Positions 1 through 9,670 of a stretch of 64,000 nucleotides of DNA are shown piece by piece. The notes under the pieces are model-generated. The model was not told where the DNA came from. It ran no database searches and was given only the letters and a program-made list of their open reading frames with translations. The stretch's first letter is position 1, and every line of letters starts with the position of its first letter. The stretch lies in assembly GCA_013416795.1 (NCBI GenBank), contig RQSC01000026.1, positions 512,330 to 576,329 on the forward strand. Direction: 5' to 3'. A program made the translations under genes and the position numbers. This stretch comes from Prasinococcaceae sp. CCMP 1430. Lineage: Eukaryota > Plantae > Prasinodermophyta.

Positions 1-943
1 CGCCGGCACCGCCGCTGCCGCTGCTGCTGCTGCTGCGGCCGCGCTGCGCCCCGCGCGCCACAAAAAGATGCGCGCGCGCCCGCCACGTCAGCGCGGGCAG
101 ACCTCGCGCTCGCAGCGTCGGTCGGGGCTCTCCTTGCTGCTGCTGGCGAGCGCCCCCATCAAATCGCAAGGACGCGGTCCAACGGCCCCGGGCCTCGCCA
201 CGCTTTTTAACATGTCCATGCCGCACGCGCAGCAAAACGCACTGTTTTTTCCATGCGTCGTTCATGAATGGTTTTTGACGGTTTGAGGGAGAGAGGGTCC
301 GGCCGGATGCATGCCGCCGAAGAAGCGCCCGCGACGACAATCCCAGGCGTCGCAGCGGGGGCTTTATGATGGGTGGTTGGCCGGCCGAAGCACGTTGGTT
401 GTTGGTGTCGGTGTGGGTGTGGTGACGTGATCACACACACACACTTGACTGCTGCTGTGATGGCCGGCCGGCGGCCGGCGCGCCGGCGGCGCCCGCGGCG
501 CNNNNNNNNNNNNNNNNNNNNNNNNNNNNNNNNNNNNNNNNNNNNNNNNNNNNNNNNNNNNNNNNNNNNNNNNNNNNNNNNNNNNNNNNNNNNNNNNNNN
601 NNNNNNNNNNNNNNNNNNNNNNNNNNNNNNNNNNNGGGGCCGCGCGCAGGAGAGAGAGGGGACGGCGGAGGGGGCCCGGGAGGGGGGGCGTGCGCCGCCG
701 CGCGGCGCAGAGCTCCTTGTCGGGTGGGGCTTGGGGAGGGGGGGTGCGGTGGGCGCGGCCGCGGCGCGGCCGCGGCGCTCCCGGCCGGCCCTCCCAGCGG
801 CTCGGGGGGCAACTGGCTAGCGGGGGTCAGCTGGGGTCAGTGGGGGTGTCGCTCCCGCTCCCACCCACCCACGTACCAACCCACCCTGCGCGCGCCCTCT
901 TGTCGTTCTGCGCCGCAGCCGCCTGCGCCCCTGGGAAACGGCC

Positions 944-1956
944 ATGGGGATGATGGGAGCGACGTTGGCCGCGAGGCCGGCGCGCGCGGCGCATGGCATG
1001 CCCCTTGCGCCGCGTGCGCGGCGCGGGCGAGCGCGAGAGCGGCGCGTTGCGGCAAGAGCGGACGAGGGCGGGCGCGATAGGGCAGCTGGCGGCGACCGGG
1101 CCGCTACGGGCGATGATGAGGGCGCCGCACTTATTGAGTGCGCCGATGAGCTGGGAGCCGGTGCCAGCACCACCGGCAGTGGCGACGCAGCATCCGAATC
1201 GGCCAGCAGCAACGACGAGCCCGTAGCCCTGCCGGCTGCCGGACCGGCTGCAGCGAAGGGCGGTGCACTGCGCGCGGCGTTCGCTACGGTGGTCTTGCTT
1301 GTGTGCGCTGGCGCATCGGCCGCCTACGCGGGCGTCCTCCCGACGCTCGACCATCTGCCCGGCTGGCGCGAGCTAGTCCCATTCCTCGAGAGCCAGCTGC
1401 ACAAGGAGCTGCAACAGCTGTACATGCCCGCGCTGTCCGCTGCAGCGCGCCTCGGGGCGCTCGTCGTCGTGCGCCTGGCCGCTGAGCCTGTGGCGCGCTT
1501 CCTCTACACGACCATCTTCGGATCTGGGGCCGACTCGCAGTGGGAGAACAGCTTCGAGCGCCGCCTCGTCGTGGCCGCCAAGGGCCCTGCGGAAGTCGTG
1601 CTGCTGGTGAGCGCGGTCTGCGCGCTGCTGGAGCACGTGGTCGGTCCGCTCCTCGCGCTGCCGCCGTCGAGCGTGCGGCTGCTCACCAACCGCGTGACGT
1701 CGCTCGCGCTGGTGCTCGCGCTGGGGCGCGTGCTCTTCGCATGGAAGGATCAGCGCCGCACCGAGGCCGAATGGCAGGCGGAGATCTCGGGCGAGGCCGA
1801 CCCCGCCATCGGCTCCGTCGACAAGCTTCTCTCGGCCCTCATCGTGGCCATCACTGCAGTGGTCTCGCTGCAGTCGCTGGGCTTCGACGTGAACTCGCTG
1901 CTCGCACTAGGCGGCATCGGCGGTCTCGTGCTCGGTCTGGCCGGTAGGGACACGTC
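944..1956 (+). CDS. MscS-family mechanosensitive channel (organelle-type), truncated after TM3
   Basis: Arg/Ala-rich N-terminal targeting-like peptide and several hydrophobic segments ending VDKLLSALIVAITAVVSLQSLGFDVNSLLALGGIGGLVLGLAGRDT (MscS TM2-TM3 pattern). Similarity ends at ~1956 and the cytoplasmic beta-domain is absent. Confidence 0.7.
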
Positions 1957-2875: not shown

Positions 2876-4651
2876 CTACGCGGGCGGCAGCGCCCCAGCA
2901 GCGCCCACCACGCCCACCACGCTCGCCGTGCGGCAGCGCCTCCCCCACCCCCCTGCCGCGCCTGCCGCGCTCGTCACGCCGCGTGCCGCGCCGTCGAAGC
3001 CCGCGAGCAGCCGCGCGAGCTCGGCGGCGAGCCCGCGCGCGTCGCCGAAGTGCACGCCGCGCACGCCGGCGGGCACGAGCTCCTCCACGCACGGGTAGTG
3101 CAGCGCGGCCACCGGCGCGCCCGCGCCCAGCATGTCGACCGCCTTCATGGGCAGGTCGATGCCCGACGAGCTGGCGTGCATGCTCACGCCCAGGTCGGCG
3201 CAGCCGAGCAGCAGCGGGTAGTCCGAGGCCTCCAGCCAGGCGGTCGCCACGCGGACGCCGCGCCCGAGCTCGTTGGAGGCGACCAGCCGCTTGGCCTCCG
3301 CCTCGAAGGCGCCGCGCATGGGGCCCTCGCCCGTGACGACGAGGAGGAGTCTGGGCAGTGCGATGTTTTTTGTCGTTGGTGGTGGTGTTCTTGCTGCTGC
3401 TGCATCTGGTTTGTCCCCCCCCTTCTGATGATGACGAGCACTGTCCTGCTGCTGCCGCTCGTACAGCCGCTCGTACAGCCGCGCGGCCTCGAGCAGCATG
3501 CCGAGGTCCTCGTCGGGCGTCCACGACGTGCTGCTCACCACGAGCGCCGGCCGCGAGGCGCGCCAGCGAGTCTTGGCGTCGCTCTCGTCCTCCTCGGTGG
3601 TGGGCGAGAGAAAGTCCTCCTCCCCCCCCCCCTCCTCGACGACGCTTCCCCCCAGGAGCTGCGGCGCGAGGCGCGCGAAGAGGGCGCGCGCCTCGCGGGG
3701 CGTGCTGCGCCGGAAGGCGGCCGCCGGGCGGTCGTAGAGCACCGCGCAGCGGCCGCCCCCCCCGCCGTCGCGGACGACGCCCGCGCGGCGCAGGTGCGCG
3801 GCCATCTCGCGCGTCACGCAGAGGTGCGCGTCGGCGAGCGCGCCGGCGGCGTGCTCGTACAGGCGGTAGGCGCGCGTGGCGGGGTGGCCGGCGGAGAGCC
3901 GCAGCGCCAGCAGTGTGTGGCCGAGGTTGTGCCAGTCGACCACGAGGGCCGCGCCGCGCAGGCGCGCGGCCAGCCAGCACGCCGTCATCGCGGGCGGGGC
4001 CGGGGGGGTCTGGAGCAGGATGAGGCGCGTGTGGTTTGTTTTCTGGGCGTCGGTGAGGAGGAGGGCGTGGAGGAGGGCGAAGAAGGAGCGGACGACGCGC
4101 GAGGGGAGGCGGAGGAGGTAGAGGAGGGCGCTTTGTTGTTCCGTTTTTTGGGGGGGGGTGTTGGGGAGGGGGATGAGGCGGAGGCGGGGGGAGTCGGCGT
4201 TGGCGTCGGTTGCGTCGCTGTTCTTGTCGGGGCGAACGAACGAGAGGAGCGCGGGGGCGGGCGGCCGGCCGCCGGCGTGCGAGATGACGTCCACGTCGAA
4301 GCCGGCCTGGGTGAGGAGGGAGAGGGCGTGGTACTGCATGCGCGGCGAGCGCCCGAAGTCGCCCAGGACGACGACGGTGGCCTTCTTTCTTTGTTTTTTG
4401 TTGCTGTTGGTGGTGGTGTTGCGGCGAGGGGGGGAGAGCAGGTAGAGCGCCGCGGCGACGAGGGCGACGAAGGTCGCGAGGGCCGCCGCGAGGGCGTAGT
4501 AGTGCTGCTGCTGCGGGCGCGCACGTCGTCGTTGTTGGGTGTTGTCGTCGGCGGCGGCGACGATGGGGGGGAAAGAGAGGGAGGAGCACAGGGCGAAGAG
4601 GAGGAGAGCTTTGGGGAGGAGGAGGGGAGGGGGTGGAGATTGTGTGACCAT
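2876..4651 (-). CDS. ALG1: Chitobiosyldiphosphodolichol beta-1,4-mannosyltransferase
   Basis: Motifs VVVLGDFGRSPRMQYHALSL, VDWHNLG, VSSTSWTPDED, ADLGVSMHASSSGIDLPMKAVDM; N-terminal signal anchor. Intronless; ATG chosen at 4651. Confidence 0.9.
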   Translation of the reverse strand: MVTQSPPPPLLLPKALLLFALCSSLSFPPIVAAADDNTQQRRRARPQQQHYYALAAALATFVALVAAALYLLSPPRRNTTTNSNKKQRKKATVVVLGDFGRSPRMQYHALSLLTQAGFDVDVISHAGGRPPAPALLSFVRPDKNSDATDANADSPRLRLIPLPNTPPQKTEQQSALLYLLRLPSRVVRSFFALLHALLLTDAQKTNHTRLILLQTPPAPPAMTACWLAARLRGAALVVDWHNLGHTLLALRLSAGHPATRAYRLYEHAAGALADAHLCVTREMAAHLRRAGVVRDGGGGGRCAVLYDRPAAAFRRSTPREARALFARLAPQLLGGSVVEEGGGEEDFLSPTTEEDESDAKTRWRASRPALVVSSTSWTPDEDLGMLLEAARLYERLYERQQQDSARHHQKGGDKPDAAAARTPPPTTKNIALPRLLLVVTGEGPMRGAFEAEAKRLVASNELGRGVRVATAWLEASDYPLLLGCADLGVSMHASSSGIDLPMKAVDMLGAGAPVAALHYPCVEELVPAGVRGVHFGDARGLAAELARLLAGFDGAARGVTSAAGAAGGWGRRCRTASVVGVVGAAGALPPA

Positions 4652-4937
4652 GGGGGAGCCCGTTTTGCGGGGACGGTCTTCGTGGCGGCGGGGATGGCGG
4701 TGGTGCCGTTGGGGGGGCAGGAGCGGCAGGGTGCGAGAGAAAGGGGGGGGGCTCGAGGCAGCTGCTGCGTAGCGTGCGTGGGGTTGTGGTTGAAAGGGGG
4801 GGTGGAGGTGGGCGCTCGGGGGCGCGCGCGCGCGGTGCGCGCGCTCTGGCGGGTGCGCGGGGGCGGGGGCGTTCTGCTGCGACGCGATCGGATGATGATG
4901 AGTGAGTGTTGGTTCGCGCGGCGGGGGCGGGCGGGGC

Positions 4938-4944
4938 AAAAAAA
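4938..4944 (-). terminator. RNA polymerase III oligo(T) terminator of the tRNA-Pro gene
   Basis: Seven consecutive T on the minus strand, 4 nt after the discriminator base. Confidence 0.75.
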
Positions 4945-4948
4945 TACG

Positions 4949-5127
4949 GGGGAGTTGGGGGAATCGAACCCCCGGCCTCTTCCACTTCAAAGGGAATTCC
5001 CTACTCTTCAGCGATTGCACAGGGCAATAGCCGAGGAAGAATCAGTTTGGGTTTGGGGAAAACCCCAAACGTACCACTAGACATCGTCAAAATCAAAGTC
5101 ATTGTAAACCCTGATTCGCAAACTCCC
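4949..5127 (-). tRNA. tRNA-Pro(AGG) interrupted by four introns (exons 5127-5119, 5082-5072, 5044-5034, 5003-4999, 4984-4949)
   Basis: Spliced sequence GGGAGTTTGGTCTAGTGGTATGATTCTTCCTTAGGGTGGAAGAGGCCGGGGGTTCGATTCCCCCAACTCCCC (72 nt). Perfect 7-bp acceptor, 5-bp anticodon and 5-bp T stems; U8, A14, G15-C48, G18G19, U33, G37, TTCGA and C73 all in place, with the typical eukaryotic tRNA-Pro D-arm GTCTAGTGGTATGAT. A T7 tract follows 4 nt downstream. Confidence 0.88.
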
Positions 5128-5368
5128 AATGGCACTATCCACTCTTCGGCGGCAGCCCCGAATGGCCAGCGGCGAAAATGTTGAGAATATCTGTCGCGTC
5201 AGCGCGCGCCCCGCTGACGCGATAGCCGCGGCCCCGCAGGGCCGGTCCTACGTTTACTCTGTTCCGTAAAAAAAAAACTACATCAAAAAGCACGGGAAAA
5301 GTTGGCCGTTTTCGGTCGTAGACCCTTTTCAAAATTTCGTTCGATTTGATTAGGAGTCCTTCGGGTTT

Positions 5369-6644: not shown

Positions 6645-7165
6645 TTGCGCGCGACGCCGTCGCCGCTGCTCCAGCGACGACGCGGGCGACGCGAGCGCGG
6701 CGAGCGCGTGGAGCTCATCCGCACCCGTGTCCTCGAGGTCGTAGCTGGGCAGCGAGTTGGGCAGGCGCAGGTCCGCAACGTCCATGTCCGAGGGCGCGCG
6801 CACGCAAAGCACCTCGGAGCCATCGGAAGCGCGCAGCACGACCACGCCGCCGTCGGGCACATCGCTCGCCGCGCACACCACGGCGCGGTACGCGCGTTCC
6901 GCCGCAGAGCGCTTCTCCTGCGCACGCGCCGCGTCTGTGGCGGCATCAGCGGCGGCGGCGACGACCCCATCGACACCGGCATCGGCATCGGCGTCGGCAT
7001 CGGCATCGTCGCAGCCATCGCCATCGCTGCTGCCTTCGCCTCCTCCCCGGCCGCTCACCTCGACCGCGGCGGCGCGCAGCGCTCCGCCGCCGCCGTCGCC
7101 ATGGCCTCCGACCAAGAAGGCTGCGATGGAGAAGACGCTCGATTTTGAGGATCCGCCTGCGATCG
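6645..7165 (-). CDS. Uncharacterised coding exon (gene fragment)
   Basis: GC3-rich frame (AAERAYRAVVCAASDVPDGGVVVLRASDGSEVLCVRAPSDMDVADLRLPNSLPSYDLED...RAQK) ending at a GTGCGG donor-like site; upstream end abuts the NRPS-like fragment. Confidence 0.35.
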
Positions 7166-7169
7166 ATCG

Positions 7170-8797
7170 TGGGCGCTCTCCCTGCCCGCGCCCCCCCGCC
7201 TCGCCCCGCCGCCCGCGCTGCGCGTCGTGGCGCTCGGGGGCGAGCCCATGCGCCGCGGCGTGGTGGAGGCGTGGGCGCGCGCCGTCGAGCTGCGCAACGT
7301 GTACGGCGTCACGGAGGCGTGCGCGTACCAGACGTTTCACAGGATGCGCCCGGGCGAGGACCCCATGTGCATCGGCGCGCCGCTGCCGTGCTGCGCGGTC
7401 GACCTCGTGCCTGACGACAGCGGGGAGGAGGAGGGCGACGATCACCACGCGGCAGCGTCGATCGGCGTGCTGCGCGTGCGCGGCCCCACGGTCGCCTCCG
7501 GCTACCTGGGCGGCGAAAGAGGCGCCCTCACGGAAGCGTTCGCCACGGACGAGCGGAACGTCCGCAGCTTCCTGACCAACGACCTCGCCTACGAGCGCGC
7601 GCCCGACGAGCTGGTGTTCGTGGGCAGGCGCGACGGCCAGGTGAAGATCGCGGGCGCCCGGGTGGAGCTCGGGGAGGTCGAGGCGGCGCTGGGCACGTGC
7701 CCGCTCGTCGCGGGCGAGCGAGGCGTCGCGGCCGTCACGGTCCTCGCGCCCACGACGCACGGCTCTCCCGCCGCCGCCGACGACGACGCACAGCGAGCCC
7801 CCTCCAACCCAACCCAGCTCCTCGTCGGCCTGGTCGTCCCCCACCCCTCCGAAGAAATCCAGGCCCTGCCGTGGGACGCCGCGTGCGAGCGCGCCGCCAT
7901 CGGGGCCTGCGCCGTGCTGCTGCCCCAGCACGCCGTCCCCTCGCGCGTGCTCCCGATCGGCGACATCCCGCTCACCGCGTCGGGCAAGGTCGACAGGCGC
8001 GCGCTGGCGCGCTTCGCGCGCGCCGCGCTGGGGGCCGAGGCGGAGGCGCGGCGCGCGCGCGCCCTCGTCGTCGAGCAGGAGCAGGAGCCCCCACTCTCGC
8101 GCCTCGAGCGCGCGGTGGCGGGCGTGTGGGCGGCGGTGCTGGGCGCCGAGGTCGCCGACGTGCTCGCCGACTCGTCGTTCCTGGCGCTCGGCGGGAACAG
8201 CCTGGCGGCGCTGCGCGCCTCGCGGATGCTGCAGCGCGTCGTCGTCGCCCCGCGGTCCTCCGAGGCGGCAACCGTGGCCCTCGCCGCCGTCGAGCGCGGC
8301 ATCGACGCCGGCGAGGCGGCGGTGCTCGCCGCCGGCGCGAGGAGGGCGGCGAAAGAAAAGGCCGCGGCCTGGTCGTCCGAGGAGGAGGACGCCGCGTGCC
8401 TGTTCGGCCTGGACATGGGGGCGCTCGCGCCGTGCGAGCTCGTGCTCCGGCCCGTGCTCCGCGAGTACGCCGCCTTCCTCTCGGGCCGCGGCGTGACCGT
8501 CAGCGGCGACGCGGGCGCCCAGCAGCCCCACCGGCAGCACCCCCCCCTCGGGAACGCAACCGCCCCCGCCGACCAGACGACCCACTGCCCACAGACACCA
8601 CCACCACCACCACCACCACCACCAACACCAACGCTCGCCGACCGCCTCCTCATCCAGACCTGCGGCGAGGGCCGCGGCGCGGTGGCGCGCGCGCTCCTCG
8701 CGACCGGGGCCTCCTCCCCCGACGCGGCCCTTCCCGACGGCTTCGGCGCGCTGCACGCCGCCGCGGCGGCGGGCGCCACCGAGTGCGTGGGCGCGCT
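7170..8797 (+). CDS. NRPS-like protein fragment: C-terminal half of adenylation domain + carrier (PCP/T) domain + start of ankyrin repeats
   Basis: LRVVALGGE, NVYGVTE, GRRDGQVKIAGARVELGEVE and PLTASGKVDRRAL (A-domain motifs); FLALGGNSLAA (phosphopantetheine Ser motif); GFGALHAAAAAGATECV (ankyrin). Truncated at both ends. Confidence 0.8.
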
Positions 8798-9670
8798 TGC
8801 AGCGGCACAAACGCCCGTTCGCCATCGTCCTCAGTCTCCGTCTCCATGGCGAAGTCCGAAAAGTAGTCGCGAGAGCCGAAGAAGCGCGAGTCCACGAGCG
8901 AGCGAAGCAGGCCGCCTGGCAGAGCTGCGACCGTATGGCGGCGTTCCGCGCACATGGCCAGCAGTGCCACATCTGCGACGCTCGCACGTCGGCCGACGAC
9001 GCGCACGGCGGCGACGGCACAGCGTGCGGCCCGCACGAATCGTGCACGAGGTCGCAGGTCCTCCCTGCCCGCGGACGATGGAACCACGGTGGTGTCCATG
9101 CCCGAGAACGCGCTTGCGCTGCCAACCCTGCGGCTGCTGTGCCGCGCGGCGTTGAAACGTCCGAAGTTCTCACGCGCGACGGCCGGGAAGCTGTCCTTCG
9201 AAGGCACCGATCGCACTGCTATCCACGGGTGGCGCAGGCACTCGGCCGCCGTAGGGCGGCTCGCGTAGTCAACAGTGAGCATCGCCCTCACCAGCTGGCG
9301 CGCGGGCGCGCCCACGTGCGCCCACTCGCTCTCGACCCACTCGATCCTGCCGTGCACAATCTTGCGATAGACGGACATGTGCGCATCCGCCAAGCCTTGC
9401 GGATGGGTGCCGGCCGGGGGTGGATCGGGGGAGAATGGGAAGCTGCCGCAGAGCATGATAAAGAGCATCACCCCGAGGCTCCAGACGTCGCACCGCTCAT
9501 CGTACGGCTGCCCGAGCAGAATCTCAGGCGCGACATAGTTGGGCGAGCCGAGGCGCGTTGCGAAGCGCGCATCCATCCCGTTCTGCACGTCTCGCTTCTG
9601 CGCAAAGCCAAAGTCGATGAGCTTAACTTCGGCATCCTTGGCGCCGGTGGCGAATACGACGTTCTCGGGC
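8791..9670 (-). CDS. Ser/Thr protein kinase, CAMK/CDPK-like, C-terminal lobe exon (partial)
   Basis: PENVVF...VKLIDFGFA, GSPNYVAPEIL, DVWSLGVMLFIMLCGSFPF, RPTAAECLRHPW. Exon starts after a CAG acceptor; 3' end runs into the NRPS-like fragment without a stop. Confidence 0.85.

Follow-up and report, generated by a model that had tools for sequence, protein, structure and literature searches.

Here we show that a tRNA-Pro(AGG) gene, lying in what the neighbouring proteins indicate to be nuclear DNA of the marine green alga Prasinoderma coloniale, is split by four introns into five exons, one intron above the published maximum that we found for any tRNA gene. Because its exons are unchanged and its introns variable in wild relatives, the gene is very probably in use; we put the probability that it is a working nuclear tRNA-Pro(AGG) gene of P. 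coloniale, with transcription and splicing as predicted below, at roughly 80%. Judged by its sequence, it is distinguished by its lineage, by the number of its introns, by two anticodon-loop introns placed around a 5-nt exon that carries the anticodon, and by a first splicing motif that appears to be assisted by the 5' leader.

Splicing of eukaryotic tRNAs is usually described as bound to position 37/38 by a ruler mechanism, with Cyanidioschyzon merolae as the main nuclear exception. Prasinodermophyta, to which P. coloniale belongs, is the deepest-branching phylum of the green lineage. An earlier reading of this DNA, made without database searches (the sequence-only reading), had named a maximum of three introns per tRNA gene, and the literature gives the same figure for Thermoproteales (PMC4033280), C. 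merolae (PMC3728597) and the nucleomorph of G. theta (PMC4090602); for Chondrus crispus the highest number is two (bioRxiv 10.1101/2021.12.21.473619). According to one review, tRNA genes with ectopic introns are almost absent from green algae (PMC3978253). Full-text literature searches returned no tRNA gene with four introns, Prasinoderma does not appear in a 2026 review that covers the tRNA genes of photosynthetic organisms, and the P. coloniale genome paper does not discuss nuclear tRNA genes.

Results

A colinear tRNA-Pro(AGG) gene in five exons

The window, by which we mean the whole stretch of 64,000 nt that was analysed, was read on the minus strand from 4850 to 5250. It contains at 4949-5127 (-) a tRNA-Pro(AGG) gene of 179 nt, colinear and not permuted, with four introns and five exons (Table 1). 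Excision of 36, 27, 30 and 14 nt at sites 9/10, 21/22, 32/33 and 37/38 leaves a 72-nt sequence that ARAGORN calls tRNA-Pro(agg); the four intron positions and the 72-nt product proposed earlier thus came out exactly on re-cutting, and the T7 terminator said to follow the gene is there as seven T at 4944-4938. Pairing of the spliced sequence is complete in the acceptor (7/7), anticodon (5/5) and T (5/5) stems. Its sole non-standard pair, U13/U22 in the D stem, occurs also in uninterrupted reference tRNA-Pro genes, with which G37, C73 and G1:C72 likewise agree.

The type 2 Pol III features of the gene are a perfect box B, an A-box core (AGTGG) intact in exon 2 and a conserved T7 run. The A box is interrupted by intron 1, which sets its first two bases apart from the core, and the A-to-B distance is ~100 nt. 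A scan for bacterial promoters and terminators was set aside as irrelevant for a Pol III gene.

Table 1. Features of the split tRNA-Pro(AGG) gene, in window coordinates
Feature	Coordinates	Strand	Evidence
Whole tRNA-Pro(AGG) gene, tRNA positions 1-73	4949..5127	-	ARAGORN on the spliced product; T-arm and acceptor scan
5' leader, positions -1 to -8	5128..5135	-	Minimum-energy fold and RNAalifold consensus; invariant in three haplotypes
Exon 1, positions 1-9, 9 nt	5119..5127	-	7/7 pairing with 66-72; invariant in three haplotypes
Intron 1, 36 nt, site 9/10	5083..5118	-	Hairpin and BHB register; seven variable sites
Exon 2, positions 10-21, 11 nt, 5' part of D arm including A-box core	5072..5082	-	Identical to uninterrupted reference tRNA-Pro genes; invariant
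Intron 2, 27 nt, site 21/22	5045..5071	-	Perfect 8-bp hairpin and BHB register
Exon 3, positions 22-32, 11 nt	5034..5044	-	ARAGORN; identical to reference tRNA-Pro genes; invariant in haplotypes
Intron 3, 30 nt, site 32/33	5004..5033	-	4/4 central helix CUUC:GAAG and inner hairpin of 3+5 bp
Exon 4, 5-nt micro-exon U33-A34-G35-G36-G37 with anticodon	4999..5003	-	ARAGORN; reference alignment; invariant
Intron 4, 14 nt, canonical 37/38	4985..4998	-	Missing at exactly these borders in the L006-type haplotype
Exon 5, positions 38-73, 36 nt, box B at 4960-4970	4949..4984	-	Only GGTTCRANTCC match in the window
T7 run, Pol III terminator, 4 nt past the discriminator base	4938..4944	-	Present in all haplotypes

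Comparison with uninterrupted tRNA-Pro genes

References for the exon junctions came from a metagenome scan with the variable loop and T arm. Its matches were mostly prokaryotic tRNAs and included marine contigs with uninterrupted eukaryote-type tRNA-Pro(AGG/CGG/UGG) genes (a marine tRNA cluster); the scan returned reference tRNAs only and no Prasinoderma-like ortholog, and a scan of JGI metagenomes with exon 5 gave 0 matches. The spliced sequence aligns with the reference genes without gaps, at 57/72 identical positions for Pro(AGG) and 59/72 for Pro(CGG). Compared with both of these genes, positions 8-27 are identical, spanning junctions 9/10 and 21/22, and so is the anticodon loop except for base 34, spanning 32/33 and 37/38; the differences are in stems. 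Identity across all four junctions means that the excisions restore a standard tRNA-Pro exactly.

The marine contigs of the tRNA cluster (L023:1-7107, also L031, L044 and L046; 47-48% G+C) consist almost wholly of tRNA genes, with a full set of 46 uninterrupted eukaryote-type genes found by ARAGORN in ~7 kb. The two ends of L023 carry a direct repeat of 141 bp (1-141 = 6967-7107), and L031 and L044 match L023 in rotated form at 95-99.8% identity, which implies that the molecule is circular or that 6966-bp units are arrayed in tandem.

Bulge-helix-bulge geometry of the ectopic introns

Under the rule for archaeal or eukaryotic bulge-helix-bulge (BHB) motifs, the two exon bases before the 5' splice site form the 5' bulge together with the intron base that follows them. 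In the central helix, exon bases -6 to -3 are paired with their counterparts at -6 to -3 of the intron, and the 3' bulge consists of the two terminal intron bases plus the base with which the following exon opens. Introns 1-3 all lie in this register, each with an unpaired first base, a hairpin, pairing at -6 to -3 and a 2-nt tail; the common layout that had been described for the three non-canonical introns is therefore present in all of them and is the one that the BHB rule demands.

Intron 1 has an 11-bp hairpin (earlier counted as 10 bp), a 5' bulge U-G-c, a 3' bulge a-u-G and a central helix of 3/4 pairs with exon positions 5-7 and an A/G mismatch. The perfect 8-bp hairpin of intron 2 is capped by a UUUU loop and accompanied by a 5' bulge U-A-c and a 3/4 central helix with D-loop positions 16-19; the 3/4 helices of introns 1 and 2 and the perfect hairpin of the latter were reproduced on recomputation as they had been reported. 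In intron 3 the central helix is complete (4/4, CUUC:GAAG) and borrows the 5' strand of the anticodon stem, the bulges are C-U-c and a-g-U, the inner hairpin has 3+5 bp and the outer helix only 2 bp. Both hairpin and central helix were attained by shuffled sequences at frequencies of 4e-5 for intron 1, 3e-5 for intron 2 and 2e-3 for intron 3, and the corresponding shuffle p for a BHB layout in intron 4 was 0.03.

Each of introns 1-3 agrees with a relaxed BHB (hBH or HBh'), which calls for a 3-nt bulge with the splice site next to a central helix of ~4 bp and for at least one flanking helix. The strict form (hBHBh') requires 3-nt bulges on both sides of a 4-bp central helix and a flanking helix of more than 2 bp at either end; set against it, intron 1 has flanking helices of 11 and 11 bp with a central helix of 3 bp, and intron 3 has a central helix of 4 bp with an outer helix of 2 bp. 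The RNAalifold consensus moreover favours registers in which the 3' bulges of introns 1 and 3 are paired, and the 3' halves of the motifs are, as modelled, relaxed and not strict. For intron 3, which had been called a strict BHB, the CTTC:GAAG helix and the bulges stand, and the label is too strong, given its 2-bp outer helix and the consensus pairing of its 3' bulge. Introns 1-4 show no resemblance to one another and have no other copies in the window, so there is no sign there of a mobile intron family.

Folding of the precursor and a proposed order of splicing

An 11-bp outer helix of the first BHB is present both in the minimum-energy fold computed for the primary transcript and in the RNAalifold consensus of three haplotypes: leader bases -1 to -7 and G1-G3 are paired with U11-A21 of exon 2, and leader base -8 with the first base of intron 2. 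Among 8-mers of the window, a fraction of 3.6e-4 would be able to form the leader part of this helix, and leader bases -16 to -1 are invariant in the three haplotypes described below. Closure of the first BHB by the leader is a feature that the sequence-only reading did not contain, and we infer its role from the folds; if the leader in the transcript were shorter than 8 nt, the outer helix would be predicted to shrink to ~6 bp.

The leader helix and the central helix of intron 2 use the same exon 2 bases, which makes the first and second BHB motifs mutually exclusive. Forcing BHBs 1-3 together costs +17.6 kcal/mol. Forced one at a time, the motifs of introns 1-4 lie +1.7, +3.2, +4.9 and +8.7 kcal/mol above the minimum-energy fold, that of intron 3 (+4.9 kcal/mol) being in competition with the anticodon stem, and the cost of the intron 2 motif after removal of intron 1 is +0.3 kcal/mol. 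Intron 4 lacks an inner helix, as is usual in eukaryotes. Its helix has 3/4 pairs in the primary transcript and becomes 4/4, including the anticodon-intron pair U32:A(-3), only once intron 3 is gone; located at 37/38, short and with a 32:-3 pair, it has the features of a canonical eukaryotic intron. Because of the energies needed to force each BHB, the folding model suggests that the introns are removed in the order 1, 2, 3, 4. In C. merolae, BHB introns are removed according to the stability of their motifs, the more stable first and the 37/38 intron last (PMC3728597), an order with which the one suggested here agrees.

The maturation pathway that we propose would begin with a precursor of ~185-200 nt, transcribed by Pol III with box B and the A-box core of exon 2 as internal signals and the T7 run as terminator. 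Removal of the four introns would fall to the tRNA splicing endonuclease together with a ligase. Introns 1-3 would offer the endonuclease local BHB-like signals that are independent of the mature domain, with the motif of intron 1 closed by the long outer helix between leader plus G1-G3 and exon 2, and intron 4 would be handled as an ordinary 37/38 intron whose anticodon-intron pair arises after intron 3 excision. CCA addition and probably A34-to-I editing would then yield a product reading CCC and CCU.

Invariant exons and variable introns in ocean haplotypes

Relatives of the locus were reached through its neighbouring proteins in independent ocean-metagenome assemblies; an exact look-up of the P. 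coloniale ALG1-like protein matched no recorded contig. The locus recurs, flanked by the same genes, on nine independent contigs that represent two further haplotypes: a TARA scaffold (L002:630-810) with ~96% identity over the region, and a second type (L006:899-1064) with ~88% identity, which is identical on seven contigs from seven assemblies (L006/L011, L012-L017). Contigs L007-L010 were left out because their upstream DNA is too short to reach the tRNA.

The mature 72-nt sequence is the same in all three haplotypes. Variable sites number 0/72 in exons vs 15/107 in introns, the latter with three indel events in addition (Fisher p = 4.6e-4, a comparison behind which stand few independent substitutions, the haplotypes being closely related). 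Decayed exons and substitutions at a neutral rate, as expected of a pseudogene, are thus not what is found, all stems being intact and none of the 72 exon bases changed. Within intron helices, substitutions keep the pair in 7/8 cases. Helix changes among the seven variable sites of intron 1 preserve pairing in 4/4 cases (pair 12:19 is U.G, C-G or U-A across the three haplotypes), a G-C pair of intron 2 is G.U and still paired in the L006 type, and in intron 3 pairing is preserved in 2/3, with one pair broken in L002. The central helices are invariant, and the other intron changes fall in bulges, loops or a single mismatched position.

Intron 4, which measures 16 nt in L002, is absent from the L006 type exactly at 37/38, where TAGGG is directly followed by TGGAAG; this precise absence is a natural confirmation of the intron borders. 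The L006-type lineage, with an ALG1-like protein that is 96% identical, accordingly has the three ectopic introns only and no 37/38 intron. The intron complement is therefore changing among close relatives, and the haplotype sequences indicate that tRNA introns are being gained or lost within Prasinoderma.

No tRNA was detected by either scan, near ALG1 or elsewhere, on contigs L003 and L004 of a more distant relative (58% ALG1 identity), and none was found on L001, a TARA scaffold with a 99%-identical MscS-like gene, which was set aside. L001 matches the window only at window positions 636-1952 (98.7%), after which similarity ends (L001:1366-6898), and it contains a 100-N gap; it is either a chimera that arose in scaffolding or a genuine rearrangement that distinguishes strains. 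Contig L051:1-1641 (68% G+C) carries a T arm and 3' acceptor strand partly identical to those of the tRNA-Pro, with no recognisable 5' half and with a hairpin after the acceptor strand. ARAGORN finds no gene on it; it could be the end of something like a tmRNA, what is left of an integration site, or a further hidden gene.

Standard tRNA finders overlook the gene

It had been predicted that standard tRNA finders would miss such a gene, and both tools applied to the genomic sequence did. ARAGORN reported no match in the window and, run in intron mode on the precursor, again none; it missed the orthologous gene on the related contigs too. Rfam at gathering thresholds did not find the genomic gene, and at E up to 10 its sole match within the gene was the 18-nt T arm. 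A generic scan for a T arm with a complementary acceptor strand within 330 nt returned 5127-4950 as its only match in the window and, on ~70 kb of related contigs, the orthologous genes only, with zero false positives in ~260 kb counted over both strands. Annotation of tRNA genes in the P. coloniale genome with standard tools, and probably in genomes of its relatives, would be badly incomplete.

Stop codons being rare at such G+C, an ALG1-like open frame (2876-5020, -) continues upstream of its likely start, the ATG at 4651, and runs through the tRNA gene; ORF-based annotation could swallow the tRNA-Pro gene within this frame.

Genomic context and demand for the product

The window has a G+C content of 68%. 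Its ORF at 944-2170 is 100% identical to EukProt PRCOL_00003228, and the ALG1-like glycosyltransferase (beta-mannosyltransferase) encoded downstream of the tRNA at 4651-2876 (-) falls in a 90% cluster with PRCOL_00002569; on this sequence evidence we assign the window to the nuclear DNA of P. coloniale. A further ORF at 7227-9155 (+) encodes the end of an AMP-binding domain, an AMP-binding_C domain and a phosphopantetheine-binding domain, the arrangement of an NRPS-like adenylation-carrier protein.

In the established pattern of eukaryotic decoding, A34 of a tRNA-Pro is converted to I34 by editing, and the tRNA then decodes CCU and CCC. Proline codons in two genes of the window are CCC 35, CCG 27, CCA 7 and CCT 4; with CCC the commonest (35/73), tRNA-Pro(AGG) is likely to be in heavy demand, which fits the strict conservation of its exons.

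Discussion

The architecture of the gene and the BHB-type layout of its ectopic introns, both proposed by the sequence-only reading, are borne out by exact coordinates, shuffle statistics and haplotypes with invariant exons. Its sequence places it among the BHB-mediated disrupted tRNA genes. The term "archaeal-style" that had been used for its splicing holds as far as the BHB layout goes; since eukaryotic precedents exist, "C. merolae-style" is the better label.

Several other accounts of the locus have to be weighed against that of a working gene with BHB introns. Short exons (5-11 nt) leave latitude in the choice of junctions, and one might therefore suppose that tRNA-like pieces lie together by chance, or that the locus is mis-assembled or comes from a contaminant. 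This supposition is effectively refuted: exons 2 and 3 are identical to those of reference tRNA-Pro genes, the generic scan gave no false positives in ~260 kb (both strands counted), the locus recurs with its flanking genes on nine independent metagenome contigs, and the neighbouring proteins are P. coloniale proteins. It is also improbable, though less so, that we are dealing with a decaying or retired gene (a pseudogene), or with a tRNA-derived element retained for another role, for instance as a chromatin boundary or as a promoter element of the neighbouring ALG1-like gene, from which no mature tRNA is made. The interrupted A box would fit this account, and four inserts in one small gene are unprecedented; against it stand 72 exon bases without a change where the 107 intron bases have 15 variable sites plus 3 indel events, the integrity of every stem, an intact and conserved box B and terminator, and helix-preserving intron substitutions, which point to selection on RNA structure and not on DNA.

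A slightly better chance, still a small one, belongs to a functional gene whose inserts are not recognised as BHB motifs; the cuts would be defined by some other feature, such as the hairpins alone, a lineage-specific nuclease or a guide, and the BHB-like pairings would be incidental. The weak 3' halves of the motifs speak for this reading, as do thermodynamic and consensus folds, in which the 3' bulges of introns 1 and 3 are drawn into pairing, and many ectopic introns of the G. theta nucleomorph form no defined BHB (PMC3978253). All three introns, however, lie in one exact register that shuffled sequences rarely attain, their central-helix strands stay constant next to intron bases that vary, and eukaryotic endonucleases are reported to cleave BHB substrates without dependence on the mature domain (PMC4090602). 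We therefore favour a working tRNA-Pro(AGG) gene with ectopic introns of BHB type.

The closest known system is that of C. merolae (PMC3728597), which shares with the Prasinoderma gene a nuclear location, several short ectopic introns (in the D stem or loop and elsewhere) next to one at 37/38, strict or relaxed BHBs at the junctions and genes missed by standard finders. The two differ in the number of introns (a maximum of three there, four here), and an ectopic anticodon-loop intron is not reported from C. merolae, whereas here the 5-nt exon with the anticodon lies between introns at 32/33 and 37/38. Further differences are the lineage, which is the green Prasinodermophyta, and the closing of the first motif by a leader:exon helix. 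Splicing is shown experimentally in C. merolae, and ordered removal with the 37/38 intron last, as it occurs there, is suggested here by computed folds.

Thermoproteales, as covered in the review PMC4033280 of the work of Sugahara et al. (2007, 2008), likewise have several BHB introns at many positions, including relaxed hBH and HBh' forms. According to the same review they are archaeal, their introns are cut by an (alpha-beta)2 EndA, and a gene has three introns at most; similar introns are common to different tRNA genes, consistent with transposition, whereas the four introns described here are unrelated and single-copy in the window. The G. theta nucleomorph and Chondrus crispus (PMC4090602; 10.1101/2021.12.21.473619) have D- and T-loop introns beside the canonical one, validated there by RT-PCR. 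Their ancestry is red-algal, with up to three introns in G. theta and two in Chondrus, where they occupy the fixed sites 20/21 and 58/59; many G. theta introns lack a defined BHB. The prasinophytes Ostreococcus and Micromonas (Maruyama et al. 2010, as summarised in PMC3978253) are, like P. coloniale, green picoalgae, with tRNA genes that need BHB-type processing, as is predicted for the gene described here; the genes summarised there are circularly permuted with the junction at 37/38, in contrast to the colinear gene with three ectopic introns found here.

The gene described here extends ectopic tRNA introns to the green lineage and raises the known maximum per gene from three to four. Its wild haplotypes, one of which lacks an intron, are a natural system for the study of tRNA intron gain or loss, and also suit the study of how one enzyme handles competing RNA folds. 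More tentatively, and with somewhat less than even confidence, we propose that P. coloniale has heavily fragmented tRNA genes genome-wide, with up to four introns each, that mature by ordered refolding in which each excision creates the next substrate. In the gene at hand, the leader:exon 2 helix would build the first BHB, excision of intron 1 would free exon 2 for the second, and excision of the 32/33 intron would create the anticodon-intron pair required for the canonical cut. If this is true, no other colinear tRNA genes so far described would be as fragmented; taken together with the red algae, BHB-mode splicing at any position would be either ancestral in Archaeplastida or repeatedly evolved, and live gain or loss of tRNA introns would be visible among ocean populations.
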